From the sequence record NC_010811.2: a stretch of DNA of 64,000 bases; one strand, written 5' to 3'. Position 1 is the stretch's first letter; every line of letters starts with the position of its first letter. A model generated the notes under the pieces. It was not told the origin of the DNA. It saw only the letters and a program-made list of their open reading frames with translations, and ran no database searches. This document shows positions 1,862 to 31,029 of the stretch, one piece after another. The position numbers were made by a program, and so were the translations under genes.

Positions 1862-2568
1862 AGAAAGCCACTGATCTGTTCCAAACACGTGATCGTGTTG
1901 TGGGACGTCGCGGTGCAAATGGCACTGAGCAACCTCAAGACCAGCCGTACGACAGCATGCAAGTGGATGATGAACTGCCGATCGGCATGTCGCGGGGCAA
2001 TCAATCGGATCACAGCGTGAACGATGTGGTGCAGCCCACGATTCCTGTGACTGGCGCCATCCGTCGTCTGCAGACGACTGCTGCCTCCAAGTATCCGCCG
2101 CTGCGTCAGCCACTGCCCAAGGAACCGCCCACGTACAACATCGTCGGGTACCATGCAACACCCATCGACAATTGGGCCTCGATCAAGGCGAAGGGACTGG
2201 CTATCGGCAAGTCGTCGCCCGCAGCGCAAGACTGGGTCGGTAAGTGGAGCGGCAAGGCCGTCTACTTCCATCTGCAGTTCCCTTCGCACGAGCTGGCGAA
2301 CGGCTACGACCCAGATACTGGCGAACCGTACACCATCACCATCGAGACCAAGCTGCATCACGGTGCGGAGTATTTCGTACCGGACGAAGATGCAGCGACC
2401 AACGTCGATGAGACGCCTGACGTCATCCGTCACAAAGGCTCGATCGCCGTCGGTTATCCAACGCCGCCCGGCGACTTCATCCGCGTACATCTGGTCGACA
2501 CGCTGGCCGCTCGCGCATGGGCCAAGGCCAATGTCAAGCGCTGGCCCGTTACCTTCCACAAGGTCTGA
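1858..2568 (+). CDS. Putative ADP-ribosyltransferase-fold protein with an N-terminal pro-region
   Basis: C-terminal ~150 aa has GYHATP..NWASIKAKGL, then AVYF and a downstream acidic FVPDED, resembling the H-Y-x ART core (YHGT..I...GL). It is preceded by the TGAIRRLQTTAA motif. Confidence 0.55.
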   Translation: MKKATDLFQTRDRVVGRRGANGTEQPQDQPYDSMQVDDELPIGMSRGNQSDHSVNDVVQPTIPVTGAIRRLQTTAASKYPPLRQPLPKEPPTYNIVGYHATPIDNWASIKAKGLAIGKSSPAAQDWVGKWSGKAVYFHLQFPSHELANGYDPDTGEPYTITIETKLHHGAEYFVPDEDAATNVDETPDVIRHKGSIAVGYPTPPGDFIRVHLVDTLAARAWAKANVKRWPVTFHKV

Positions 2569-2570
2569 TC

Positions 2571-4130
2571 ATGGCAACTCCTACTCCGCTCCTGTACAAC
2601 AAAGATCCGAACCAAGACACGATCATCGCGGCAGATGTCAGCCCGTGGCTATTGACGGGCGAAACGCTGACCAGTATCGCGCTGCTGCCGGTGTCTCCCA
2701 GCACCACGCCTGCGCTCACCGCTACACTGATCAGTGCGCCGAACATCACGCCCGCCAACATCACGCTGTCAGGGGGCGTAAACGGAGTTAGCTACGGATT
2801 CCAACTGCAGGTGACGACCAACGCGCGTGTGCTGCTGGTCCAAGTCGCCGCTTCCTGCTATTCCAATCAGCAGTTCGATCCGTACACAGCGCAGAATCCG
2901 TATGCGTACCAGGACCTTGTTGACCAGCTGGAAGTCGGTCAGTCTGCGGTGGGCACCGCGGTCTTCGCGTTCCCACCGCAGATCGATCCGAAGGGTGGCA
3001 ACGTCCGATACGAACTGCTGGCCGACGACGGCACCGTGTTCTCCACAGGCAACGCCTTCTCCTACGTGATCTCCAGCAACGGGCTGGCCAACATCGTGAA
3101 AGCGCAGTGCGTTGTGGTGGCGCCTACCACGTTGCCTCCGACGCTTCTGGGTCAGTCGTATCAACTGCGATACACGCTGGAGCTTCCGCAGTCGTCCGGC
3201 ATTCCTGCCGATCCACTGACCGGCAATCTTGGCCAGAACACGTTCTTCCAGTTCGAGAACATCACGATCGTGGACAACGTGAGCGTGCCGCTTGGTGCGC
3301 AGCCCACGGTCGAGCTCAAGGGCATGCCCGCGCATCTGTCGCTGGTCACGGACAAGATGTACGACAATGTGACGTTGGAGCTGCAAGCCAACAACCAGAC
3401 GCTGGCTGGTCCCAGTCCCATCACCGAATATCAGCGAACTGCTGACGGATGGGCATGGTCCGGTGTGCTGGACACGACGAACCTCACAGTGTCGCTGGTG
3501 CCTTACACCATCGTCTGGCGTTACTGGTCGTCCGCTGCGCCAAGCCTCGTGTATCAGGAAGCGACCGAGCTGTTCGTGGTGAATGCCAGCATGCTCACCG
3601 CCATGAACGATGTGCGCGCTCGCATCAACAAGGCGCATACCACGCTGTACGGAGCACCCGACATGCTATTCCCCAATCCCACCGTGATGACGTGGTTGCG
3701 TCGAGGCGCTGACATGTTCAACGGTGCGTACGGTCAGTTCACCGCCTTCACGATGACCAACGCGCTGGGCGTGATCCGCGAATACTGGCTGATCTGCGCT
3801 GAGAAAGCCGCGCTCGAAGCTCAACTGCTGGCCGAGGGTGAGAAGGCATTCAACTTCCAAGGCGCTGCCATCTCGTTGGACGTGGACCGGGTCACCGCCT
3901 ACGACAATCTGATCGGCAAGCTCCAGCAGCAGTTGGACACCGAACTCAAACCCATCAAGCAGAACCTCATCATCAAGGGCGTTACCAAGGGCGACGGATC
4001 GACCGATCCCACCAAGCTGCAAATCGGTGCGATCGGTGCAGTGGGCATCTCCATCACCAACGCCAACGTCTGGGGTCGCGCGGGTACGCCTTACGGTGCG
4101 TTCGGCCTCAACCCTGGAGGACTCACATGA
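2571..4130 (+). CDS. Putative head-tail connector/neck protein (multidomain)
   Basis: ATG at 2571. N-terminus KDPNQD..AADVSPWL..GETLTS resembles phage head-tail joining domains; beta-rich middle; helical C-terminus (EAQLLAEGEKAFNFQG..ISLDVDR). Structural context. Confidence 0.45.
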   Translation: MATPTPLLYNKDPNQDTIIAADVSPWLLTGETLTSIALLPVSPSTTPALTATLISAPNITPANITLSGGVNGVSYGFQLQVTTNARVLLVQVAASCYSNQQFDPYTAQNPYAYQDLVDQLEVGQSAVGTAVFAFPPQIDPKGGNVRYELLADDGTVFSTGNAFSYVISSNGLANIVKAQCVVVAPTTLPPTLLGQSYQLRYTLELPQSSGIPADPLTGNLGQNTFFQFENITIVDNVSVPLGAQPTVELKGMPAHLSLVTDKMYDNVTLELQANNQTLAGPSPITEYQRTADGWAWSGVLDTTNLTVSLVPYTIVWRYWSSAAPSLVYQEATELFVVNASMLTAMNDVRARINKAHTTLYGAPDMLFPNPTVMTWLRRGADMFNGAYGQFTAFTMTNALGVIREYWLICAEKAALEAQLLAEGEKAFNFQGAAISLDVDRVTAYDNLIGKLQQQLDTELKPIKQNLIIKGVTKGDGSTDPTKLQIGAIGAVGISITNANVWGRAGTPYGAFGLNPGGLT

Positions 4131-4994: not shown

Positions 4995-5489
4995 ATGAGT
5001 CAACAGATCAACCATACGCAAGCCAAAGCTGCGCTGACGGCTGCCGGTTTTCCGGTGTCGGCTGGCAGCAACTGGAACAACGTGGACCAAGGTTCGTGGG
5101 ACCAGTTCGCAGCCAGCGCTGCCTACGGAAAAGTCGCCTACGACCTGTACTCGACCAACTACGGTTTCTCGTTCCCCGTGATGCCGGACGCGGTGGCCAA
5201 TGCTGCTGCGAGCGGTGCCTACAGCGCCACTCTGGGTGTGACGCCGCTGACCGCTACGCATGCGGTTGCCATCACCAACTTCGCTTGGAATCTGGTGGAA
5301 ACCAACGGTCCGGGTACGTCGTACGTGTGGGACTTCGGCGACGGCACCGGCACGACGACTACCAGCACGGCAACGGGTCCTGCGAACCACACGTATGCAA
5401 CGGCTGGCTCGTACACGCCGAAGGTCACGGTCACGGTGGGTGGCGTTCCGCACCTCATCTCGGCCGCAGCTCCGGTCGTGGTGTCGTAA
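4995..5489 (+). CDS. PKD (Ig-like) domain protein, probable virion surface/decoration protein
   Basis: Canonical PKD signature YVWDFGDG...NHTYATAGSYTPKVTVT; SD-like AAGGA upstream. Confidence 0.8.
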   Translation: MSQQINHTQAKAALTAAGFPVSAGSNWNNVDQGSWDQFAASAAYGKVAYDLYSTNYGFSFPVMPDAVANAAASGAYSATLGVTPLTATHAVAITNFAWNLVETNGPGTSYVWDFGDGTGTTTTSTATGPANHTYATAGSYTPKVTVTVGGVPHLISAAAPVVVS

Positions 5490-5806
5490 TGTACGCCCGT
5501 CGCGTTCGTTCTCGAGCGCGAAACGGGTACGGCATATCCTCCATCCGGCGCGATTCGTATTCTACGGTGAACGGTATGAATACGAAAGCCGGATGGTGGG
5601 AACTCCATCGGCAAGTTGAGAAACGATCCGGTGGGCTATGCGAAGCCCGGATCGCCGGAGTGCGATGCGGTAAGCGCGGCAAGGACGTTCACCACATCGT
5701 AAAGCTGAGTGATGGCGGTACCAACTCGATGGCTAATCTTATCCATCTGTGTGAAGACTGCCATGACCGTAGACACAACCACATGTTCCGGAGACGGAAG
5801 AAATGA
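5489..5806 (+). CDS. Small HNH endonuclease
   Basis: ATG at 5489 overlaps the previous TAA. CEA..RC...DVHHIVKLSDGGTNSMANLIHLCEDCHDRRH is a zinc-binding HNH motif. Confidence 0.85.
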   Translation: MYARRVRSRARNGYGISSIRRDSYSTVNGMNTKAGWWELHRQVEKRSGGLCEARIAGVRCGKRGKDVHHIVKLSDGGTNSMANLIHLCEDCHDRRHNHMFRRRKK

Positions 5807-6114
5807 CGTACAACATCAGCGCAGCAACAAAGCGTCTCCAAGGTAGCTTGGAAGTCAATGCCAACAAACTGAAGACAGCCAAAGATGTGCATCGTGCACT
5901 GTCCTTCTACCCAGGTGTCGTGAAAGACAAGGGGATCATGGCCGAGCTTGCCGAAAAGGGGGATGCGCCAGCACCGAAGGATGCTTTCGTTGAGGTACGC
6001 GGGTCGCACATCGTTCCGAAGCATCTCGAGCACATGCACGATCTCGGGATCGAAATCGTATCGATCGAAGTTCTTGGTAGCGCTCATTACGAGCTGCAGG
6101 TGAAATTCCACTGA
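5803..6114 (+). CDS. Small hypothetical protein with AAxxRL leader (putative internal head protein)
   Basis: Starts MTYNISAATKRLQG; 103 aa. Confidence 0.65.
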   Translation: MTYNISAATKRLQGSLEVNANKLKTAKDVHRALSFYPGVVKDKGIMAELAEKGDAPAPKDAFVEVRGSHIVPKHLEHMHDLGIEIVSIEVLGSAHYELQVKFH

Positions 6115-6121
6115 AGACATC

Positions 6122-6508
6122 ATGGCCTACGACATCACAGCAGCAGTCAGCCGCTTGGCTGGCACCAAGTGTGCAGTGTTCGCCGATGCACACAGCGAAG
6201 CGGGTATCGCGCTGAAGGAGATCGCCAAGATCCTGGGTCCGCACTTCCTCAAGGACGAGCGGCCCGGCGAGCAGGTCATCATCTGGCGTACTTCTCAGTT
6301 CAAGGCTGAGCTGTCGCTGAACTTGGACGACGACGTGCTGGACTTCACGTTCAAGGACAAGGGCGCCACCGCTGGCTTCTCGGCCGAAGGCTACAACGCG
6401 CGAACCCTGTTCCAGGACATTCGGCACAACATCACGCAGTACCGTCCGACCAAGAAGGTGCCGACGGACGTGCAGATGGTTCGTGACAAGTTCGAACATC
6501 TGCAATAA
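6122..6508 (+). CDS. Small hypothetical protein with AAxxRL leader (putative internal head protein)
   Basis: Starts MAYDITAAVSRLAG; 128 aa. Confidence 0.65.
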   Translation: MAYDITAAVSRLAGTKCAVFADAHSEAGIALKEIAKILGPHFLKDERPGEQVIIWRTSQFKAELSLNLDDDVLDFTFKDKGATAGFSAEGYNARTLFQDIRHNITQYRPTKKVPTDVQMVRDKFEHLQ

Positions 6509-7734: not shown

Positions 7735-8067
7735 ATGATCTCAATCAGTGCTGCGCTTTTGCGCCTCGCGTCTACCGAAGTACAGGCCGGTTCCCCGTCC
7801 GCTGCCATCAACGCAATGGAATACGTTGAGCAGACGGTTCGCAAGGCAGGGCTGGCCGTGCAAGACATCGATCACCGGGACACGACTCACATCGCAATGA
7901 CCATCAGCGGTCAGTTCGTGCCGGTGCTCAATGCGCTGACCAAAGCCGGATTCGTTCCGGACCGTACGCAGAAAAAGGGCAGCTTCTACAAGCGGCAGGG
8001 CATGGGTACGATCCGAGTGACTGCCGGTGTCTCGTTCCGTGAAACCATCGTCATCTGTCTGGGTTGA
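7735..8067 (+). CDS. Small hypothetical protein with AAxxRL leader
   Basis: ATG at 7735 after GAGGG; MISISAALLRLASTEVQA. Confidence 0.65.
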   Translation: MISISAALLRLASTEVQAGSPSAAINAMEYVEQTVRKAGLAVQDIDHRDTTHIAMTISGQFVPVLNALTKAGFVPDRTQKKGSFYKRQGMGTIRVTAGVSFRETIVICLG

Positions 8068-8793: not shown

Positions 8794-8838
8794 AGGCTGC
8801 CCCGGCAATTACTGTCGCGGCAGCCTTCTTGCATTTTG
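8794..8838 (+). terminator. Putative intrinsic terminator
   Basis: AGGCTGCC (8794-8801) and GGCAGCCT (8819-8826) form a stem followed by a T-rich tail. Confidence 0.45.
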
Positions 8839-8852
8839 GACGCACACATCAC

Positions 8853-8860
8853 AATTTGAT
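8853..8860 (+). promoter_or_regulatory. AATTTGAT motif (putative late promoter)
   Basis: Intergenic, about 64 nt before the SNF2 ATG at 8925. Confidence 0.5.
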
Positions 8861-8924: not shown

Positions 8925-11900
8925 ATGGCGAATCCAACAATGGTGCGCGCTGACGCAACACGTCTGCGTCCGACGACCAACCTCATCATTCCACCGGGAC
9001 TCACTCTCCCGCGTAAGGAACTGAAGCAGAACTTCATGTACGTGTACACCGGCGCCTTCACGGGCACGGGCAGCTCGTTCATGACGCGTTTGTGGGCTTC
9101 CTCTTTCTTCCCGAGCCTCACCAACAGTCCGAAGTTTGGCAAGACTCGTCCTCGCGCGGTTGCCGATGGGCTGGCCAAAGAACTGCCGATGAACTTCCTG
9201 CGGCTGAAGAAGGTGGACACGCCGAACGATCCGCACTTCGTGGCCAGCGTTCCGCTGTATCAGTTCGCGTCGCATAGCAGCGAACGCACGCTGCGCTTCC
9301 TCATGGACCTGTTCATGGGCCAGCGCTGGTCCAAGACCTTGATCCAGCACACCGCCGAGCAACTGGATGAGGTGAAGGAGTGGAACCAGCAAGCGGCAGA
9401 AGCGCCGAAGGACCAACTGAGCGAGCGCGTGCTGCCCGCATCCCACGTCATCAACAACATGCGGCTGGACGCTATGGGCAGCGAAGCGCTGCGTCAGTGT
9501 CTGCTGCAAGTGCGGATCCAGTCCAAGGGTCTGTACAACGTGATCTTTGCTGACTTCAAGATCCGCAAGGAAGAAGCTCAGCAGCTGACGACCACGGAAT
9601 GGTCGATGCTGCGGTCTATCGACCTGTATCCGTTGCTCCTGCACTGGGTGCGTACCACCTTCGGTGATCGTGGACAGGCGCCGGTCGCGAGCTTCCCGGT
9701 CTCGAAGATCGCGTTCAGCCTTCCGCCGTCGCATGTGGAAAGCGCTCGCGTCAACGACCTCGGCATTTCCGTGGGTCCTGACGGTGCTCCGTACTTCCTA
9801 CCCCGGTCAGTGGACAAGAACCAGACCATCCTGTACGAAGATCGTTACACGGGAGCGGGCACTCGCAACGACGGCAGCTTTGCGCTATTGGATACAGAGC
9901 AGGGCGCCGAAGCGATGAGCTCGGGCCACGAGCCGAAGACCAAGCTGCCGCACAACATGGTGGTAGCCGTCGACTGGCTGAACAACAAGTACAGCTACAC
10001 GAACACCGAAGGCATGCTGTCGGTGATGGACCTCACGCGATTCCAGCCGGCGAACGTGGCGCACATCCACGAGCTGCTGCATTCGCGATCCATCAACGAG
10101 AAGCACGTGTCGTGGTTTGTGTCGCTGGGCGAAGCCGCAGGCGTGCCGCTTACCGCCTTCGAGACGCTGCCGTCGGATTTGGAGGACGTGCAATCCGAGA
10201 CGATGAAGGAAACGCTGAGCCGCACCGCAGGTCCTCTGCTGTGGTTCAAGACCGCTCGTCAGTCGTATGCGCAGGACATCAACGATCTGGTGCCCTTCGC
10301 GTCGATCTCGGTGAACGGCTATAGCGCGATGCGTCCGCTGGCACGCTACTTCAAGCTGATCGAAGCGGCTGTGCGCAACAACATCGAACCCGTCTACCTG
10401 AAGTACAGTGTGATGACGGTGGCCGAGATGTTCTCGTGGCTGGTGCTCATCACGCACTACACAGACGATCTGCCGCGACTCAAGGCTGACGACGCAGCGT
10501 ATCGCCATGCCGCGCTCAATCAGCGCGTGGACCCGGACTACGAAGTTCCGAGCATCCCGCTGATGGCCCCAAACATGGGCTTCCTGCCGCACCAGAAGAA
10601 GGTGCGCAACCTGATGAAGGACAGCCCGGACTTCGCAATCATGCCGGTGCAGACGGGCGGCGGCAAGTCCATCCTTCTGCTGACCGACCTGCTGCTGGAG
10701 TTCAAGGCCAATCGCAACGAACCATATCTGGTGTTGTGTCCGTCGCACTTGGTGCCCAACTACGTGAAGGAAGCAGTGTACTTCACGGGCGGCAAGCTCA
10801 ACGTGATCGCCATCACCAATCCGGCCATCCGCCAGAACGGCTGGAAGCGGTTGCAGGCCATCATGATGGCGGCACCTCGCAACACGGTCGTGGTTGTGGC
10901 GCTGGACACGTTGAAGTTCCGTCCGCGTACTGTGTCGTACGGCACGACTCCGGTCGACGTGTTCCCGGTCATCGACTTCCTGCGTCAGTTCAAGTTCGGC
11001 TACGTGGCAATCGACGAGGCACACCGCATCAAGGGAGCGACTGCTCGCAACAAGTCAGTGATGGCACTGGTCGCTGACATTCCGAAGAAGCGTCTGGCGT
11101 CGGGCACCTTCGTGCACGATTCGCCGTCGGACTTGGCGATGACCATCGCTGCGTTGGATCCCACGCTGTTTGGTACGCGCGAGGAATTCAACGACAAGTA
11201 CGGGTTGGAGGTGCGTGGAGGCCGCGTTATCAAGTGGAAGCCCAACGCACAGCGCGAGATCATGCAGAAGATCCGCAGCCGCGTGGTGATCGCCGGTGCA
11301 ATGCGCAAGGAATGGGCTGCGTTCCTGCCCAAGAAGGTGGAATGGGTTGGTGGTGTCAACTTGACTCCGGCGCAGCAAGCAGTGTACGAAGATCTGTTGA
11401 ACAAGGTCATCGAGCAGATCGAGCAGGACGCCAAGACCAACAAGGCGTTGCAGGACTTCGTGAAGGGACGCCACGCCAAGGACAACGTCCGTGACGATGA
11501 AGCGGACGTGGAAGCCGAGGACGAAGTCGAAGACGAACGCGACGATGTGGATGAGGACGCTGGTGAAGATCTCAGCGCCATGCTCAACCCGTATCTCGCA
11601 CGCCTCGAACAGTTCTTGGTGGCACCGGGCAGCGATCCTTTGGGTGCAGCACTGCTCAAGGGTGAAGACCTGCTGAGCCCGAAGGTTGCGCTCATCTACA
11701 AGCGAATCCGCCTACACCTTGAGGGCGGTGAAGCTGATGGCAAACCATACGGTCCGTTCCCAGGCAAGGTCATCGTGTTCTGCAATCAGGTGGCCGCAGC
11801 CGAAGAGATCTTCAACAGCGCACCGCCTGATCTGAAGAAGAGTGGTCTGCTGTACAAGGCCAGCGACAAGGTGGAAATCCTGTCGCAGCTGGAGAACAAC

Positions 11901-13592
11901 CCCAACAAGAAGTGGGTGGTGGGTGTTGGTCAGTCGATGGAAGAAGGGCTGAACCTCCAGTTCGCGTCGCGTATCATCCGTGCGTCTACGGTGTGGAACC
12001 CCGGCAACCTCGAACAGTCCAATGCTCGTATCGAGCGTCCGGAGTTCAAGAAGGCCGAGACCCGTCCACAGATCTTCTTCGACACGATCGTTGCCAACCG
12101 TACGTTCGACATCTCGAAGACGGCGCGTCTCATCGCGAAGGTGATCGCCGCTGCCAAGTTCGAGAACGCGGACAGCCATCTGTACGACGAGATTCCGGAT
12201 GTGCCGGTCATTCCGATGACGCTGGACACGATCCGTACGATGAACACGTGGGAACGTGTCAGCGATACGAATCCGGGCTTGGTCGAGTACATGAAGGCGT
12301 TGCAGGTGTACCAGGAGGTTCGCAACAAGGACTACGATCAGTACAAGGAGGACTACATCAAGAAGTACGGTGAAGGTCCTGTCATGTCGCCGATCGAAGT
12401 CGCGCCGACGCCGCCGGATTCCAAGCTGCTCAAGTACACTCCGTACGTTCCAGGTCTCGGCCTGTACAACGAGAAGGAGTTGGGCCTCGTACGTCTGGAC
12501 GAAGCCATGAACGTGGTGACCACGGACGAAGAGGAGGAAGACGACGAGAAGGAAGTGCCGGAAGGGTATGTGGATCCGGCCATCGTCCAGCGCGTCAACG
12601 AGCTGAACGGCAGTCTTGCGCATACCGAATGGGGCGACGGCTACATCCGTGGTCTGCGTCCGGGTGCCAAGATGGTGACGGTAGAACTGCTGAACGGCTA
12701 TCGTGTTCGCGTGCAGCGGTCGCAGGTGTTCGTTGTGGGCCGCGCACTGACCTCGAACAAGGACATCCGCAACCAGATCCTGAAGGCGATCGGCGATCTT
12801 CCGGTGAGCACGCCAGCCGAAGTGCCAGCAGATCGCTGGATTCCGAGTACCAAAGCACTCGAGATCCAGAAGAAGCAGGCAGACAAGCTGCGTCAGAAGG
12901 AAGAGAAGCAAGAGCAGAAGGAGAAGGAATCGGCGCTCAACATCGAGCTCACCCTGTTCGTTGCCAACGGCTTCTTGGGCATCGACTATCTGCTGGACGA
13001 CGAGAACCACATGGCTACTCGCGTGTTGCAGGCAGCAGGCTTCCGTACGACCCCGGAGTACTACTATTCCAAGGTCGTGAACGCCAAGGCGCTCGAGAAT
13101 CAGTTCGCACTGTGGGCAGAGAAGGGTCTGCAGATCGACCCAATCGTGCTGAAGCAAGGTGTGGGCGACGCGTTCAACGAGATGCTGCGTCTGCTGAAGG
13201 CGGGCTTGGTGCGCAATCACACCGAGACCTACAAGGCAACGCGTCAAGCGCAGGTCGTCAACTTCTACCGGCTGGAACATCGTCCGAGCAACAAGAAGGA
13301 ACTGTTCAAGCCCTACCCGATCATTCAGGATGGTGTGGCGTACATCGCACTCCCTGCAACTGGTCAGGCAGCGACGCGACTGGCAATGCAGTACAAGCGT
13401 CCGTCGTATAAGTGGATCAAGAGCGAACCGACGCTGTCCTACTTCGGTTCCTTCCAACAGGTGGTGAGCATGCTGCAGAAGCTGGAAGCGCAGGGTGTGC
13501 ACATTTCCAACAAGAAGGAGCTGAACAAGGAACTGAGCCGCTTGAAGTTGATGAAAGTGCGCAAGGTCGAGGACGATAAGGCGCTTGTCTAA
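8925..13592 (+). CDS. Large SWI2/SNF2-family ATPase/helicase (1555 aa) with a Tudor-like insert
   Basis: Motif I VQTGGGKS, motif II IDEAH, motif III-like LASGT, HelicC region (VIVFC..., EGLNLQFASRII, WNPGNLEQSNARIER). About 540-aa unknown N-terminus; AHTEWGDGYI..VTVELLNG resembles a Tudor/SH3-like domain. Confidence 0.8.
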   Translation: MANPTMVRADATRLRPTTNLIIPPGLTLPRKELKQNFMYVYTGAFTGTGSSFMTRLWASSFFPSLTNSPKFGKTRPRAVADGLAKELPMNFLRLKKVDTPNDPHFVASVPLYQFASHSSERTLRFLMDLFMGQRWSKTLIQHTAEQLDEVKEWNQQAAEAPKDQLSERVLPASHVINNMRLDAMGSEALRQCLLQVRIQSKGLYNVIFADFKIRKEEAQQLTTTEWSMLRSIDLYPLLLHWVRTTFGDRGQAPVASFPVSKIAFSLPPSHVESARVNDLGISVGPDGAPYFLPRSVDKNQTILYEDRYTGAGTRNDGSFALLDTEQGAEAMSSGHEPKTKLPHNMVVAVDWLNNKYSYTNTEGMLSVMDLTRFQPANVAHIHELLHSRSINEKHVSWFVSLGEAAGVPLTAFETLPSDLEDVQSETMKETLSRTAGPLLWFKTARQSYAQDINDLVPFASISVNGYSAMRPLARYFKLIEAAVRNNIEPVYLKYSVMTVAEMFSWLVLITHYTDDLPRLKADDAAYRHAALNQRVDPDYEVPSIPLMAPNMGFLPHQKKVRNLMKDSPDFAIMPVQTGGGKSILLLTDLLLEFKANRNEPYLVLCPSHLVPNYVKEAVYFTGGKLNVIAITNPAIRQNGWKRLQAIMMAAPRNTVVVVALDTLKFRPRTVSYGTTPVDVFPVIDFLRQFKFGYVAIDEAHRIKGATARNKSVMALVADIPKKRLASGTFVHDSPSDLAMTIAALDPTLFGTREEFNDKYGLEVRGGRVIKWKPNAQREIMQKIRSRVVIAGAMRKEWAAFLPKKVEWVGGVNLTPAQQAVYEDLLNKVIEQIEQDAKTNKALQDFVKGRHAKDNVRDDEADVEAEDEVEDERDDVDEDAGEDLSAMLNPYLARLEQFLVAPGSDPLGAALLKGEDLLSPKVALIYKRIRLHLEGGEADGKPYGPFPGKVIVFCNQVAAAEEIFNSAPPDLKKSGLLYKASDKVEILSQLENNPNKKWVVGVGQSMEEGLNLQFASRIIRASTVWNPGNLEQSNARIERPEFKKAETRPQIFFDTIVANRTFDISKTARLIAKVIAAAKFENADSHLYDEIPDVPVIPMTLDTIRTMNTWERVSDTNPGLVEYMKALQVYQEVRNKDYDQYKEDYIKKYGEGPVMSPIEVAPTPPDSKLLKYTPYVPGLGLYNEKELGLVRLDEAMNVVTTDEEEEDDEKEVPEGYVDPAIVQRVNELNGSLAHTEWGDGYIRGLRPGAKMVTVELLNGYRVRVQRSQVFVVGRALTSNKDIRNQILKAIGDLPVSTPAEVPADRWIPSTKALEIQKKQADKLRQKEEKQEQKEKESALNIELTLFVANGFLGIDYLLDDENHMATRVLQAAGFRTTPEYYYSKVVNAKALENQFALWAEKGLQIDPIVLKQGVGDAFNEMLRLLKAGLVRNHTETYKATRQAQVVNFYRLEHRPSNKKELFKPYPIIQDGVAYIALPATGQAATRLAMQYKRPSYKWIKSEPTLSYFGSFQQVVSMLQKLEAQGVHISNKKELNKELSRLKLMKVRKVEDDKALV

Positions 13593-14566: not shown

Positions 14567-15367
14567 ATGGCAAAAGTGCCTCAAGCATTCACGCAGGCGA
14601 AGCGTGCGCAAGTGCGTAAGCCTCAGGTCGCATCCGAAACCTCGATGGAGGATGCAATCCTGACGCGTCAGGTCAACACCTATCAGCAATCCATCGAGAC
14701 GAAGGACGCGGAGCACGATCAGACGCTGCTGCACGGGTTGGATTTCACGACATGGTTGCCGTTCGCGGCTAAGACCTATCGTATCAGCCCGCGCATCGAG
14801 GACTACATCCTCGTCACGACCGTGATCTGTCCGTCGGAAATCCCGAACCGCAACGGCATCGCGTTCCCGACCTCGGAGCTGGTGACATTCCAGCCACCTC
14901 CGATGAACCGGATGGTGTACAAGGCGTGGGCTGGATGTCCGGTGCATCTGGAACACGATAACGAAGTTCACGAACGAGCCTACGGCGTGATCCTCGACAC
15001 GTCGTTCCACAAGGTGGAAGGCTACGGTGGCGGCAGCATCTGGAAGGTCATGGGGCTTCTGGCAATCGACAAGCAGAAGAATCCGGACATCGCCCAGGAA
15101 GTGCTGCAAGGGTCGATCGACACGTACTCCATGGGTGCGCTGGTTGACTACTTCACGTGCGGATACTGCGGAGCGGAGAACACTGGTCGCAATCGCTGTT
15201 CGCACATCACGTCTATCAAGGACGTGAACTTCAACCTGCACAAGGACTGGAATGGGAAGTCGCATCTCTCGTTCCTCAATGCGCATGGCATTCAACCGAT
15301 CGAGTGCTCCATCGTCCGTGATCCGGCGTGGGCTCCTGCACTCAGCGACGCCGTGAGGGAGTGGTGA
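14567..15367 (+). CDS. Putative prohead maturation protease with a Cys/His zinc-finger insert
   Basis: PNRNG.AF, PVHLEH, YSMG (candidate nucleophile Ser), CGYCG..RCSH and ECSIVRDPA resemble HK97/assemblin-type prohead proteases; lies upstream of the scaffold and MCP. Confidence 0.65.
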   Translation: MAKVPQAFTQAKRAQVRKPQVASETSMEDAILTRQVNTYQQSIETKDAEHDQTLLHGLDFTTWLPFAAKTYRISPRIEDYILVTTVICPSEIPNRNGIAFPTSELVTFQPPPMNRMVYKAWAGCPVHLEHDNEVHERAYGVILDTSFHKVEGYGGGSIWKVMGLLAIDKQKNPDIAQEVLQGSIDTYSMGALVDYFTCGYCGAENTGRNRCSHITSIKDVNFNLHKDWNGKSHLSFLNAHGIQPIECSIVRDPAWAPALSDAVREW

Positions 15368-15828
15368 TGTACGAGATCAAAGCGGCGGTTGACCGCCTGA
15401 AAGCAACGGAGGTCGTCGCTGGATACAGTGGCACGAAAGTCGGTGACCTCAACAAATATGTCCGCGCCCTGAACCCGAAAGTCAAACCCATTGGCAACTC
15501 GGGTATGGGCGGCGGTGGTCGTGCTGGTGAAGCTGCGTGCTTGGTATCGGCCGAAGACGCATTGGATTTGGTGAACGCCCTGATCAAAGACGGATGGACA
15601 GGACGCCGTACTTCGAAGAGGGCCGGTCCTCCAGGACGAGAAGCTACGAAGTACGAGTACATGATCTACCGTCCGAAGGACGATCTTCCGGGTCTTCCGT
15701 ACATCACCGTGTCGAAGCCCGCGTCCGATGGCAAATGTCGTATCCGCTTGAGCCAGGAAACTGCTGCTGCAATTCGTTCGCGTCGCAACAGCAAGTTCAT
15801 GTTCAATCCGGTCAAGCGTTACAAGTAA
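15367..15828 (+). CDS. Small basic hypothetical protein with AAxxRL leader
   Basis: MYEIKAAVDRLKATEVVA; start overlaps the protease stop. Confidence 0.65.
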   Translation: MYEIKAAVDRLKATEVVAGYSGTKVGDLNKYVRALNPKVKPIGNSGMGGGGRAGEAACLVSAEDALDLVNALIKDGWTGRRTSKRAGPPGREATKYEYMIYRPKDDLPGLPYITVSKPASDGKCRIRLSQETAAAIRSRRNSKFMFNPVKRYK

Positions 15829-29290: not shown

Positions 29291-29503
29291 TTAGATGGGA
29301 ATGTGGATTTCGACCTGAAGCGTATCCGGCATTTTGCCGTTGAGGTTGGCGACTGCCAGCTCAAACGTAGGACCGGTACCCGTTACATCCGGACCCGTCC
29401 TATCATCTGTGTACAGGGTGATGGTATGCTGCCCACCTTCTTCCACGTGCTTGTAGTCGGCTGCGGTCAGTTGGAAGTTGTTGATCTTCAGCGTTGGGGT
29501 CAT
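29291..29503 (-). CDS. Small hypothetical protein
   Basis: 70 aa with ATGA overlap to the helicase. Confidence 0.5.
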   Translation of the reverse strand: MTPTLKINNFQLTAADYKHVEEGGQHTITLYTDDRTGPDVTGTGPTFELAVANLNGKMPDTLQVEIHIPI

Positions 29504-31029
29504 AGCTCCACCTTCATCTTTTGGTCTTTGCCTGCCAAATAGTCCTTCAGCGTCTGCTCATCAACGCGGGAGATTATGGGCTTGAACACCGGTTTCAGCA
29601 CCTGCCAGAACTCGGTACGCATGCACGCACGACGGATCTGCACATCATCCAGGAACAGGCGGATGATGGGCTGTGGCTTGCCATCGAACGGTGTGAGCAC
29701 GCGACTGAACCGCTGATTGGCGTTCGGCAGATTGCTGCTGGGCGTTACCTCGTACAAGGCGCTGGCCCGTGGGATGTTGGTACCCGTGGACAGCAACTTG
29801 ATGTTGCCAACGAGGATCTTGATGCGATACGTTCGCGCCTGCTGCAGGAACTTGTCGCGCTGATCCTTCTTCAAGCCGCCGAAGAACGGCTGTGCAATGG
29901 TCTTGCCTGCCATCTTGTTGATGGCCATGACCAGTGCCTTGATGGGGGTGATCTGCGCGAATGGGATCAACACCATGTGCCCGTTCTTCGCGTCCTTGAT
30001 CGCCCACTTGGCTATCAGCTTGAGGCGTGCTGGATCCTTCTCCAGACCAGACACCATACGCGTCCACATTACCTGACCCTTGGACGGTCGTGTGTAGCCG
30101 GTACGCACCAGTCGTACTTCAGGACGCAGGCGCTCGATCTTGGCCTCGTAAATCACAGGCCCCATGATGTCCCGCATCAGCACATAGCGGCCATCCTTAC
30201 GATCAGGCGTACCACTCAAGCCGATCTTCCAGCGGCAGTTCAGCTTGTTGAGGATCGACGCATACTGAGGAGCGGCCCCCGTATGAATCTCGTCGACCAT
30301 CACCACCGAAAACATGTCCCGGACCGCGCGAAGTAGTTTCTGCCCGGCTTCGCTGTAGAAGGTTTGGACGGTGACCAGGCAGATGTCGTACTTCTCGAAG
30401 TCTGCGAGTCGCTTTGCAATGCCGATCTGACTGGGTCGGCAAGTGGTAAGTGCTTCCTGCGTTTTTGAGCCAACGAAGGTCTCCTTGAAGCCCAACAGCC
30501 ACTCTCGCTGCGACGCCAGGATCATGGTCTTCTTGCCAATCTTGCAGATGGCCGCAGCACCCATAACAGTCTTACCACTACGCGGAGGCGCCTTGATCAC
30601 GCCTCGACGTTTCTCGATGATCGCTTGTACTGCCTCTTCCTGATACTTGCCCTTATACCGACCGGTGAATCGGATGCGACGTTCCATGGGCACGTCTGGG
30701 AAGTGCGACTTGACCTTGTACTCAACGCCCTCGCGATCCAGCACTTTAGACAGCGCACTCCAGTTACCGGTGGGCGTCTTCAGGTAACGCTTCTTGCCAA
30801 TCTTCACGGTCTCGCATAGACGAGCACCGCCTTGAAATGCTGCACACTCCTCGCACGTAGGCGTGATCTTGGTTTCGGACTGCAGTCGATCTTGCTTGAA
30901 CTCGCACTCGTTGCACGCCTTCTCGTTGAAGAAGTAGTGGGTGAAACTGTGCACCAGATCTTCTTGTACTGCGTTGGGGATCGCCTTCTTCGGGATGAAG
31001 AAGGACTCGCGTGCGTGGATGGTGATCAT
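29500..31029 (-). CDS. uvsW: SF2 DNA helicase, UvsW/XPB-like, with an N-terminal Cys motif
   Basis: Q motif YQEEAV, APPRSGKT, VDEIH, GLSGTPDRKDG, QRFSRVL; CNEC...CEEC at the N-terminus. Confidence 0.85.
   Translation of the reverse strand: MITIHARESFFIPKKAIPNAVQEDLVHSFTHYFFNEKACNECEFKQDRLQSETKITPTCEECAAFQGGARLCETVKIGKKRYLKTPTGNWSALSKVLDREGVEYKVKSHFPDVPMERRIRFTGRYKGKYQEEAVQAIIEKRRGVIKAPPRSGKTVMGAAAICKIGKKTMILASQREWLLGFKETFVGSKTQEALTTCRPSQIGIAKRLADFEKYDICLVTVQTFYSEAGQKLLRAVRDMFSVVMVDEIHTGAAPQYASILNKLNCRWKIGLSGTPDRKDGRYVLMRDIMGPVIYEAKIERLRPEVRLVRTGYTRPSKGQVMWTRMVSGLEKDPARLKLIAKWAIKDAKNGHMVLIPFAQITPIKALVMAINKMAGKTIAQPFFGGLKKDQRDKFLQQARTYRIKILVGNIKLLSTGTNIPRASALYEVTPSSNLPNANQRFSRVLTPFDGKPQPIIRLFLDDVQIRRACMRTEFWQVLKPVFKPIISRVDEQTLKDYLAGKDQKMKVEL

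Follow-up and report, generated by a model that had tools for sequence, protein, structure and literature searches.

The window analysed here, the whole 64,000-nucleotide stretch of record NC_010811.2, carries at positions 8925-13592 a frame that is open for 1555 aa, begins MANPTMVRA and matches ORF129 of Ralstonia phage phiRSL1, at record positions 70925-75592, with 100% identity. The gene is annotated as "DNA helicase", a label that its family members bear everywhere, and its product matches PHROG phrog_62 ('DNA helicase') with an E-value of 7e-301 over aa 1-1554 (profile positions 272-1599 of 1881). In phiRSL1, ORF129 represents a family of very large SNF2 ATPases that is confined to phages; the family is compact and often intein-bearing, with 168 clusters at 50% identity. 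A six-frame search of the genome returned the same single place, so that ORF129 is the sole SNF2 gene of phiRSL1. The replication module of the phage has a separate SF2 helicase, ORF153 (phrog_16), and a DnaB-like helicase, ORF149. The phiRSL1 genome measures 231 kb.

Organization of ORF129 and its motor

The features of the locus, all on the plus strand, are as follows.

8797..8838 (+), G+C-rich hairpin with a T-rich run behind it, terminator-like, after ORF128 (read from the sequence)
8853..8860 (+), AATTTGAT, candidate phage promoter element, 65 nt before the ORF129 ATG
8925..13592 (+), ORF129 coding sequence, 1555 aa, ~175 kDa, SNF2-family ATPase
8961..8996 (+), conserved N-terminal peptide R-L-R-P-T-T-N-L-x-I-P (aa 13-24), predicted disordered, pLDDT 32-41
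8985..10559 (+), family-specific N-terminal domain (aa 21-545), a mixed alpha/beta part and then a helical part
10573..11474 (+), SNF2 motor lobe 1 (aa ~550-850), from Pfam SNF2-rel_dom, PDB sequence matches and invariant motifs
10656-10670 (+), Walker A G-G-G-K-S, inside motor lobe 1
11013-11024 (+), D-E-A-H, inside motor lobe 1
11481..11579 (+), acidic low-complexity insert between the motor lobes (aa 853-885), from the translation
11763..12038 (+), SNF2 motor lobe 2, Helicase_C (aa 947-1038), with motif VI Q-x-x-x-R-x-x-R, from Pfam and invariant residues
12522..12572 (+), second acidic linker (aa 1200-1216), from the translation, low pLDDT
12597..12737 (+), small SH3-like beta-barrel of Tudor/KOW type (aa 1225-1271), from model strands and VIA-align
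12849..12935 (+), long K/E-rich helix (aa 1309-1337), helix 210-238 of the model
12942..13490 (+), basic C-terminal domain (aa 1340-1522), two tandem beta-beta-alpha-beta-alpha units with a joining helical insert

The first-pass annotation had described an SNF2 ATPase within a block of head genes, preceded by a short motif, and both points are borne out. The window holds 11 copies of the motif, AATTTGAT, where 0.58 would be expected, a count that 0 of 100 shuffles reached, and these copies are nearly all non-coding and located a short distance upstream of a start codon. Judged from sequence, the copy before ORF129 is a phage-specific, promoter-like element of a type that also precedes neighbouring virion genes. 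The upstream hairpin is a weak call, as it is missing from the list of a simple terminator scan.

The SNF2 assignment relies on Pfam SNF2-rel_dom (PF00176; aa 590-846, E-value 5e-17, 62.3 bits against a cut-off of 24.9) and Helicase_C (PF00271; aa 947-1038, 24.1 bits against a cut-off of 23.5). Across 21 homologues, the Walker A residues G578-K581, the DExH residues D697, E698 and H700, motif III (S726-T728) and the motif VI residues Q1031, R1035 and R1038 are invariant. PDB sequence matches of the motor are to SsoRad54, Rad54, DDM1 and INO80, the best being of the Rad54 type. By prediction, the motor is thus an intact SNF2 dsDNA translocase. In addition, several homologues carry inteins within the motor, which points to strong functional constraint on the ATPase. 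None of the curated bacterial SNF2 defence helicases in NCBIfam (DpdE, DrmD, ZorD, BrxH) scores above its family cut-off for ORF129; the best of them, DpdE, gives 38 bits against a cut-off of 500, a sub-threshold match of generic SNF2 character, and the PADLOC matches are likewise sub-threshold and confined to the generic motor. Beyond the motor, the wider linker region (aa 1100-1224) has a pI of ~4.3.

Domains flanking the motor

The N-terminus of ~540 aa, which the first-pass annotation had left without assignment, proves to be a domain particular to the family. Its AlphaFold model is a confident fold (pLDDT 85.7, pTM 0.76), while the first ~545 aa have no Pfam match at E <= 10 and the model has no neighbour in the PDB, with no Foldseek match at E <= 0.001 and a best VIA-align Z of 5.2 at an rmsd of 11 Å, which is meaningless. 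Matches in BFVD come from the family itself, and a profile search of 1.84 billion proteins found the domain only at the N-terminus of proteins of ~1450-2700 aa. All four of the long proteins that were scanned are SNF2 proteins, with inteins as their only extra domains. The domain was also considered as a swappable capsid-targeting module carried by different enzymes, a possibility rejected on account of its confinement to the N-termini of proteins of this size and of the 4/4 scanned long proteins being SNF2. ESM Atlas look-ups of the N- and C-terminal domains gave uninformative scores of 0.75-0.80. The conserved peptide at the start of the protein has four nearly invariant residues among homologues (R15, P16, N19 and L20) and follows immediately after the initiator Met in the homologues; no conserved cleavable leader of the kind seen in small neighbouring ORFs is evident in the N-termini of ORF129 or its homologues.

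On the other side of the motor lies the segment (aa 1228-1262, window 12606-12710) that the first-pass annotation had quoted as a Tudor domain of the UvrD/PcrA type. The fold part of this proposal stands, as the modelled strands (aa 1231-1264) form an SH3-like five-strand barrel. Within the quoted peptide, H1233, T1234, G1237, G1239 and G1258 are invariant among homologues, and the motif V-H-T-E-F-G-D-G is kept down to 28% overall identity; the PaBG, Lu11 and AD1 homologues are without H-T-E-F-G-D-G. In VIA-align, the barrel superposes on the Spt5 KOW (Z 6.6, rmsd 1.3, 45 aligned), the TDRD3 Tudor (Z 6.0-6.4), the ERCC6L2 Tudor (Z 5.9), the NusG KOW (Z 5.5) and the Thermus UvrD-CTD (7egt_D; Z 4.8, rmsd 1.8 Å, 44/47 aligned), all of these Z values being below 8, a range that VIA-align describes as common for unrelated small folds. 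As modelled, the barrel is at least as close to the Spt5/NusG KOW and eukaryotic Tudor domains as to the Thermus UvrD-CTD.

The kinship part of the proposal does not hold at the sequence level. PF21196 (PcrA_UvrD_tudor), which was detected in 10/14 control genomes, has no match at E <= 10 in a six-frame search of the whole phiRSL1 genome, nor in any of 23 homologous barrel segments; a Pfam scan of these segments gave chance matches to a Cyanate_lyase motif only. The barrel segment and C-terminal region of ORF129 have no Pfam match at E <= 10 either, and a profile of the segment run against all PDB sequences met only a chance H-x-x-F-G-D-G-I-I motif in cyanate hydratase and no UvrD/PcrA chain. 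A UvrD/PcrA-CTD identity is therefore rejected on four profile and Pfam searches.

The C-terminal domain that follows the long helix is modelled with a pLDDT of 85-94 and has a pI of 9.5. Its structural matches are weak and ACT-like (Z 5.0-5.2 in VIA-align), with no Foldseek match in the PDB at E <= 0.001. Together with the barrel, it is a candidate for binding a partner or nucleic acid.

Gene neighbourhood and virion evidence

ORF129 has the head-tail connector gene ORF118 on its upstream side, and downstream of it come the genes for the prohead protease (ORF132) and the major capsid protein (ORF136). In full, the phiRSL1 order is connector ORF118, HNH ORF122, ORF125, ORF128, the SNF2 gene, ORF130/131, protease ORF132, ORF134, ORF135, major capsid protein ORF136 and sheath ORF140, and this connector-to-sheath order is conserved in BcepSauron, Motura and ~35 IMG/VR loci, down to 33% identity. 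In the sister group of PaBG, Lu11 and AD1, the connector and HNH genes are likewise upstream of the SNF2 gene. The upstream partners of the SNF2 gene are always virion genes in the loci examined, and none of these loci has a terminase gene adjacent to it. What follows differs between the groups: protease and capsid genes are downstream in phiRSL1, whereas a DNA polymerase gene is closely downstream in PaBG, Lu11, AD1 and PhiXhv-16.

Location among structural genes is no proof that ORF129 is packaged; T4 uvsW is found among late genes, yet its product is not known to be a virion protein. The proposal of the first-pass annotation that the protein may be packaged in the virion finds real backing in PaBG, a different phage from phiRSL1. 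PaBG gene product 202 (221,161.95 Da) was identified as band 1 in the SDS-PAGE/MALDI-TOF structural proteome of CsCl-purified particles (PMC7412058, Table 1). PaBG_00202 has 1969 aa and a computed mass of 221,159 Da, and its alignment to the profile of the ORF129 family runs from the motor to the C-terminus (hhalign probability 100%, E-value 2.7e-68, 967 columns), although it is only 25-28% identical to ORF129 and ~410 aa longer. The same homology from motor to C-terminus, and the same upstream connector and HNH genes, are found for Lu11 gp100 and Dickeya AD1 gp175; unlike ORF129, these three proteins are 1950-2020 aa long, with a longer N-terminal region that is unaligned in the top match. 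Because a relative was found within purified PaBG particles, ORF129 is probably carried in the phiRSL1 virion, by homology. A large DNA-binding protein could also co-purify with particles. The DNA polymerase gene close behind the homologues in PaBG, Lu11, AD1 and PhiXhv-16 and the want of an evident conserved cleavable leader likewise speak against packaging.

Possible roles of ORF129

From the observed domains, motifs, gene position and homology to the PaBG protein we infer the packaging, the ejection and the substrate of ORF129 in phiRSL1. The most likely view is that ORF129 would be built into the capsid in a few copies and exit it together with the DNA. Once inside a new host cell, it would spend ATP to translocate along the double-stranded genome as this enters, which might help to pull in or clear the 231-kb DNA, for instance through displacement of DNA-bound host proteins; alternatively, it might give the host RNA polymerase, on which phiRSL1 depends, access to the DNA. 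phiRSL1 lacks an RNA polymerase of its own, and rifampicin blocks it (PMC5468394). We would put even money on ORF129 being such a virion-borne dsDNA translocase delivered with the genome. The intact motor, the fixed position among head genes, the PaBG virion homologue, the promoter-like AATTTGAT and the separate replication helicases all argue for it. Precedents exist in the heads of phiKZ, which contain a predicted helicase (PMC13282480), and in P1 DarB, a head-packaged methylase with a SWI2/SNF2-like ATPase (PMC5512222).

Other explanations compete for the same observations. ORF129 could be a DNA-clearing motor coupled to packaging, expressed late beside portal, HNH and terminase, which would strip RNA polymerase and other proteins from concatemers, or remodel their branches, before head filling; any copies in virions would be there only as a consequence of its contacts with the portal or the packaged DNA. 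The connector, HNH and SNF2 block common to two phage groups and the late-type promoter motif before ORF129 are consistent with this; HNH proteins beside head genes, such as HK97 gp74, help terminase cutting, and SNF2 motors such as RapA and Mot1 displace proteins from dsDNA. We consider this explanation unlikely, since the loci examined have no terminase gene next to it, no phage packaging system known to us requires an SNF2 protein, and the PaBG homologue was plentiful enough in purified virions to be excised as a Coomassie-stained band, which exceeds what is expected of an incidental passenger. Similarly improbable is an unpackaged late helper of replication, recombination or transcription (UvsW/Rad54/RapA-like), acting in branch migration, R-loop removal or RNA polymerase recycling, for which the location among head genes would reflect late timing only. 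The annotation as DNA helicase, the Rad54-type motors among the best PDB sequence matches and the DNA polymerase gene adjoining in PaBG, Lu11, AD1 and PhiXhv-16 point in this direction, as does the suggestion that, in jumbo myoviruses of groups 1 and 3, distinct Snf2/Swi2 helicases could substitute for UvsW in recombination (Iyer et al. 2021, PMC7824862). Against it stand the PaBG homologue in a purified-virion proteome, the virion genes that are always its upstream partners and the presence of other SF2 helicases, namely phiRSL1 ORF153 and the PaBG gene 210, 'uvsW' (PMC7412058).

As for how an injected motor might find its target, the first-pass annotation had the barrel (aa 1225-1271) dock it onto the beta subunit of host RNA polymerase as a UvrD/PcrA-type C-terminal Tudor. 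Barrels resembling Tudor or KOW domains do touch RNA polymerase in Mfd, CarD, RapA, UvrD/PcrA and Spt5, phiRSL1 depends on the host enzyme, and the barrel, Tudor/KOW in fold, can be superposed on the Thermus UvrD-CTD, with KOW and eukaryotic Tudor domains scoring higher and every Z below 8. The absence of any PF21196 match in ORF129, the genome and the 23 segments, the lack of a UvrD/PcrA chain among the PDB matches of the segment profile and the absence of the motif from the PaBG and Lu11 homologues make this version quite improbable. A broader proposal, which we regard as speculative and rather unlikely in its entirety, is that the supergroup of RSL1/Sauron/Motura and PaBG/Lu11 packs a stand-alone SNF2 remodeler in the head, which upon ejection would engage the host transcription machinery through a KOW/Tudor-type barrel and reel in or clear the genome in the first minute, with the N-terminal 540 aa forming a new capsid-anchoring fold. 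If true, this would define a new class of ejected phage protein, a protein-delivered 'chromatin remodeler'.

The reading of ORF129 as a translocase delivered with the genome can be set beside known systems. Poxviruses offer a case in vaccinia NPH-I/D11 and the early transcription factor subunit D6, virion-packaged SNF2-like DNA-dependent ATPases that are used at the start of infection; their partner is a viral RNA polymerase packaged alongside them, an enzyme that phiRSL1 lacks. T4 UvsW, an SF2 DNA motor, is expressed late, its gene lying in the structural gene region; it is not an SNF2 protein and is not known from virions, and ORF153 is another candidate for its role in phiRSL1. Close in concept is P1 DarB, or the methylase-SWI2/SNF2 dyad of the 'polyvalent proteins', with a large SWI2/SNF2-type ATPase that is a packaged DNA translocase; this type of ATPase is a phage head component that acts on the phage's own DNA at entry (Iyer et al. 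2017, PMC5512222). Unlike the DarB dyad, ORF129 and the four long relatives scanned contain no methyltransferase or other effector domain, the N- and C-terminal domains of ORF129 are unique to its own family, and an anti-restriction role is not part of its case. RapA (HepA) also combines an SNF2 motor with small Tudor-like barrels and acts on bacterial RNA polymerase (PMC7824862). It has two N-terminal barrels and RapA_C, whereas ORF129 has one barrel C-terminal to the motor; in addition, RapA-specific models in Pfam and NCBIfam do not match ORF129, and its N-terminal model is without a Tudor-like neighbour. The UvrD/PcrA C-terminal Tudor (PF21196) resembles the ORF129 barrel in being a general SH3-like barrel with a similar H-x-x-F/W-G-x-G-x-I/V start, but it is carried by an SF1 helicase, while the ORF129 barrel rides on an SF2 SNF2 motor.

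Jumbo phages that have neither an RNA polymerase of their own nor a phage nucleus must deliver >200 kb of naked DNA to a hostile cell, where the host enzyme has to transcribe it. A conserved particle-borne SNF2 motor, if true, would be a concrete candidate for this step of genome entry and transcription, and it would add to the few packaged DNA motors known, such as P1 DarB, a family with two uncharacterised domains and no methylase. If it is not packaged in phiRSL1, ORF129 would be an ordinary late helicase of unusually large size. Being compact, phage-specific and often intein-bearing, the ORF129 family is tractable for virion proteomics, ATPase assays and structure work.

A proposed virion-borne motor encoded among the head genes

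ORF129 may well be an SNF2 dsDNA translocase that is carried in the virion, travels into the cell alongside the genome and acts on the incoming DNA, a reading that is the best supported of those considered and that we hold at about even strength. The gene is a 1555-aa open reading frame at 8925-13592 (+) of the window, to which 62000 is added to obtain record coordinates of the Ralstonia jumbo phage phiRSL1, and its annotation is already available as 'DNA helicase' in RefSeq and as 'hypothetical protein, DEAD-like helicases superfamily' in GenBank. The features listed by the first-pass annotation are all present, namely the start MANPTMVRA, an N-terminus without known domain and the peptide at aa 1228-1262. 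The motor comprises two Pfam domains:

aa 590-846, SNF2-rel_dom (E 5e-17)
aa 947-1038, Helicase_C

In addition, phrog_62 matches ORF129 over its full length (E 7e-301), and the PDB chains closest in sequence belong to the Rad54-type motors of Sulfolobus and zebrafish and to DDM1, CHD1L and INO80. The motor is intact, as the 21 aligned full-length metagenome homologues (37-64% identity) show no variation in Walker A, DExH, motif III or the arginines of motif VI, and no other SNF2 gene is found in the 231-kb phiRSL1 genome. Two strongly acidic low-complexity stretches lie at 11481-11579, between the motor lobes, and at 12522-12572, just before the C-terminal barrel. One or two inteins (LAGLIDADG_3, Intein_splicing, Hint) are inserted within the motor of the homologues P0006, P0023, P0122, P0142 and P0169 and at the related locus L039:10001-16261, raising protein length to 1850-2700 aa.

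The position of the gene is fixed. Indeed, ORF129 is flanked by the connector ORF118 on one side and, on the other, by ORF132 (prohead protease, phrog_18299), ORF134, ORF135 (virion protein) and ORF136 (major capsid protein). By tblastn of the neighbours, this order is the same almost everywhere in Burkholderia phage BcepSauron, Achromobacter phage Motura and 35 IMG/VR loci, and is kept down to 33% SNF2 protein identity. In the 'Lupandier' sister group (PaBG, Lu11 and Dickeya AD1), a connector gene also precedes the SNF2 gene with an HNH gene placed between them, while a DNA polymerase gene follows; the HNH gene 5' of the SNF2 gene and the DNA polymerase gene after it recur in Xanthomonas PhiXhv-16. 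An upstream HNH gene is common to both phage groups, and its conserved product is possibly packaging-associated. The small HNH endonuclease genes are:

5489-5806 of the window, ORF122
L040:5029-5403, related locus
L041:3988-4350, related locus
L043:3015-3380, related locus
L004:7219-7593, related locus

This fixed head-module place of an SNF2 gene across a large jumbo-phage supergroup is new. As to ORF118 itself (2517-4130), annotated as a head-tail connector, it carries an N-terminal match to Pfam Gp77 (E 4e-7), the fibre-tail adaptor of a podophage, before its connector-family region.

Terminal domains of ORF129

Two AlphaFold models (aa 1-550 and aa 1100-1555) were built from alignments of 21 rows. 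The first is confident (pLDDT 85.7, pTM 0.76); it has no PDB neighbour by Foldseek or VIA-align and matches only its own family in a viral model library. When 1.84 billion representative proteins are searched with a profile of this domain, 168 clusters are retrieved, nearly all of them 1450-2700 aa proteins in which it is N-terminal, alongside fragments. Four long members that were scanned contain inteins inside the motor or SNF2 domains alone, with no extra effector domain. The domain is therefore restricted to the SNF2 family of ORF129, which rules out a promiscuous targeting module. Almost all members also share a short peptide, L-R-P-T-T-N-L-x-I-P, predicted to be disordered, at the extreme N-terminus.

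The second model (mean pLDDT 73) runs from an acidic disordered linker to a small barrel (aa 1225-1271), a long K/E-rich helix and a basic domain, the latter made of two beta-beta-alpha-beta-alpha units (pLDDT 85-94) with weak ACT-like structural matches only. H1233, T1234, G1237, G1239 and G1258 of the barrel are invariant across homologues, and its V-H-T-E-F-G-D-G motif is kept in PhiXhv-16 at 28% overall identity. The first-pass annotation had proposed a Tudor-like fold, and the predicted SH3-like barrel of the Tudor/KOW class bears this out.

Structural matches of the barrel (every Z is below 8, a range flagged by the alignment tool as common for small folds)
Spt5 KOW: Z 6.6, rmsd 1.3 Å over 45 residues
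TDRD3 Tudor: Z 6.0-6.4
ERCC6L2 Tudor: Z 5.9
NusG KOW: Z 5.5
Thermus UvrD C-terminal domain: Z 4.8, rmsd 1.8 Å over 44/47 residues

Since all values are below 8, they support the fold class and no particular family. The more specific UvrD/PcrA identity failed every sequence-level test run: PF21196, the Pfam PcrA_UvrD_tudor model, which is positive in 10/14 control genomes, has no match in ORF129, the whole phiRSL1 genome or 23 homologous segments, and, among all PDB sequences, a profile of the barrel segment picks up nothing beyond a similar-looking motif in cyanate hydratase. Thus, the segment is classed as a Tudor/KOW-type barrel, an assignment supported by the model. Newly defined here is a compact phage-only family that combines a private N-terminal domain, this predicted barrel and a C-terminal domain that is basic and duplicated.

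Evidence from virions and competing roles

A relative of ORF129 is a visible virion component. In particular, Evseev et al. 2020 (PMC7412058) resolved CsCl-purified PaBG particles by SDS-PAGE and identified the bands by MALDI-TOF, band 1 being gene product 202 (221,161.95 Da), named 'RuvB helicase-like protein' (PMC7412058). PaBG_00202, a tblastn match of ORF129, has 1969 aa and a computed mass of 221,159 Da. Against the profile of the ORF129 family it gives a 967-column alignment that reaches from the motor to the C-terminus (hhalign probability 100%, E 2.7e-68); band 1 is thus a true but distant homologue. The protein appeared without comment in the published virion table, and its link to the ORF129 family is new. 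Packaged motors of SNF2 type have precedents in polyvalent proteins and P1 DarB, a SWI2/SNF2-type ATPase that is packaged in the head and acts on entering DNA (PMC5512222), and phiKZ head proteins include a predicted helicase (PMC13282480). What the analysis shows directly is the domain layout, an unbroken motor, the fixed place of the gene in the head module and a homologue in PaBG virions; that ORF129 would likewise be packaged in phiRSL1, ejected and active on incoming DNA is inferred.

Other roles appear less probable. The block of connector, HNH and SNF2 genes favours a motor working late, in step with the maturation and packaging of DNA, which we regard as unlikely. An unpackaged UvsW/Rad54/RapA-like helper, in line with what Iyer et al. 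2021 (PMC7824862) broadly suggested for the Snf2 helicases of jumbo phages, is just as doubtful; the likelier UvsW-type helicase of phiRSL1 is ORF153, which lies in the replication module with the DnaB-like helicase ORF149, the beta-clamp-like ORF157 and the SbcC-like ORF161:

29500-31029 (-), ORF153, second SF2 DNA helicase (phrog_16, E 7e-48)

Lower still stands the mechanism of the first-pass annotation, in which a UvrD/PcrA-type Tudor domain would direct ORF129 to RNA polymerase. phiRSL1 lacks its own RNA polymerase and rifampicin blocks it completely (PMC5468394), but the failed sequence-level assignment speaks against this route.

Repeated motifs in and around the head module

The octamer AATTTGAT, noted earlier ahead of the gene, does lie 65 nt 5' of ORF129. 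The window holds 11 copies where shuffling predicts 0.58, nearly all of them in non-coding DNA a short distance 5' of a start codon. This excess and siting indicate a real phage signal, probably promoter-like, and AATTTGAT is a candidate phage-specific promoter element. Its copies are:

4521, 8853, 13599, 20820, 25394, 34943(-), 42024(-), 42043, 48536, 60363 and 60685, with 42024/42043 forming a divergent pair

The N-terminus of ORF129 bears only a loose resemblance, and not clearly the motif itself, to a leader, I-[ST]-A-A-x-x-R-L-x-[GA]-[ST], that is common to the N-termini of four small head-module ORFs:

5803-6114, ORF123
6122-6508, ORF124
7735-8067, ORF127
15328-15828, ORF133
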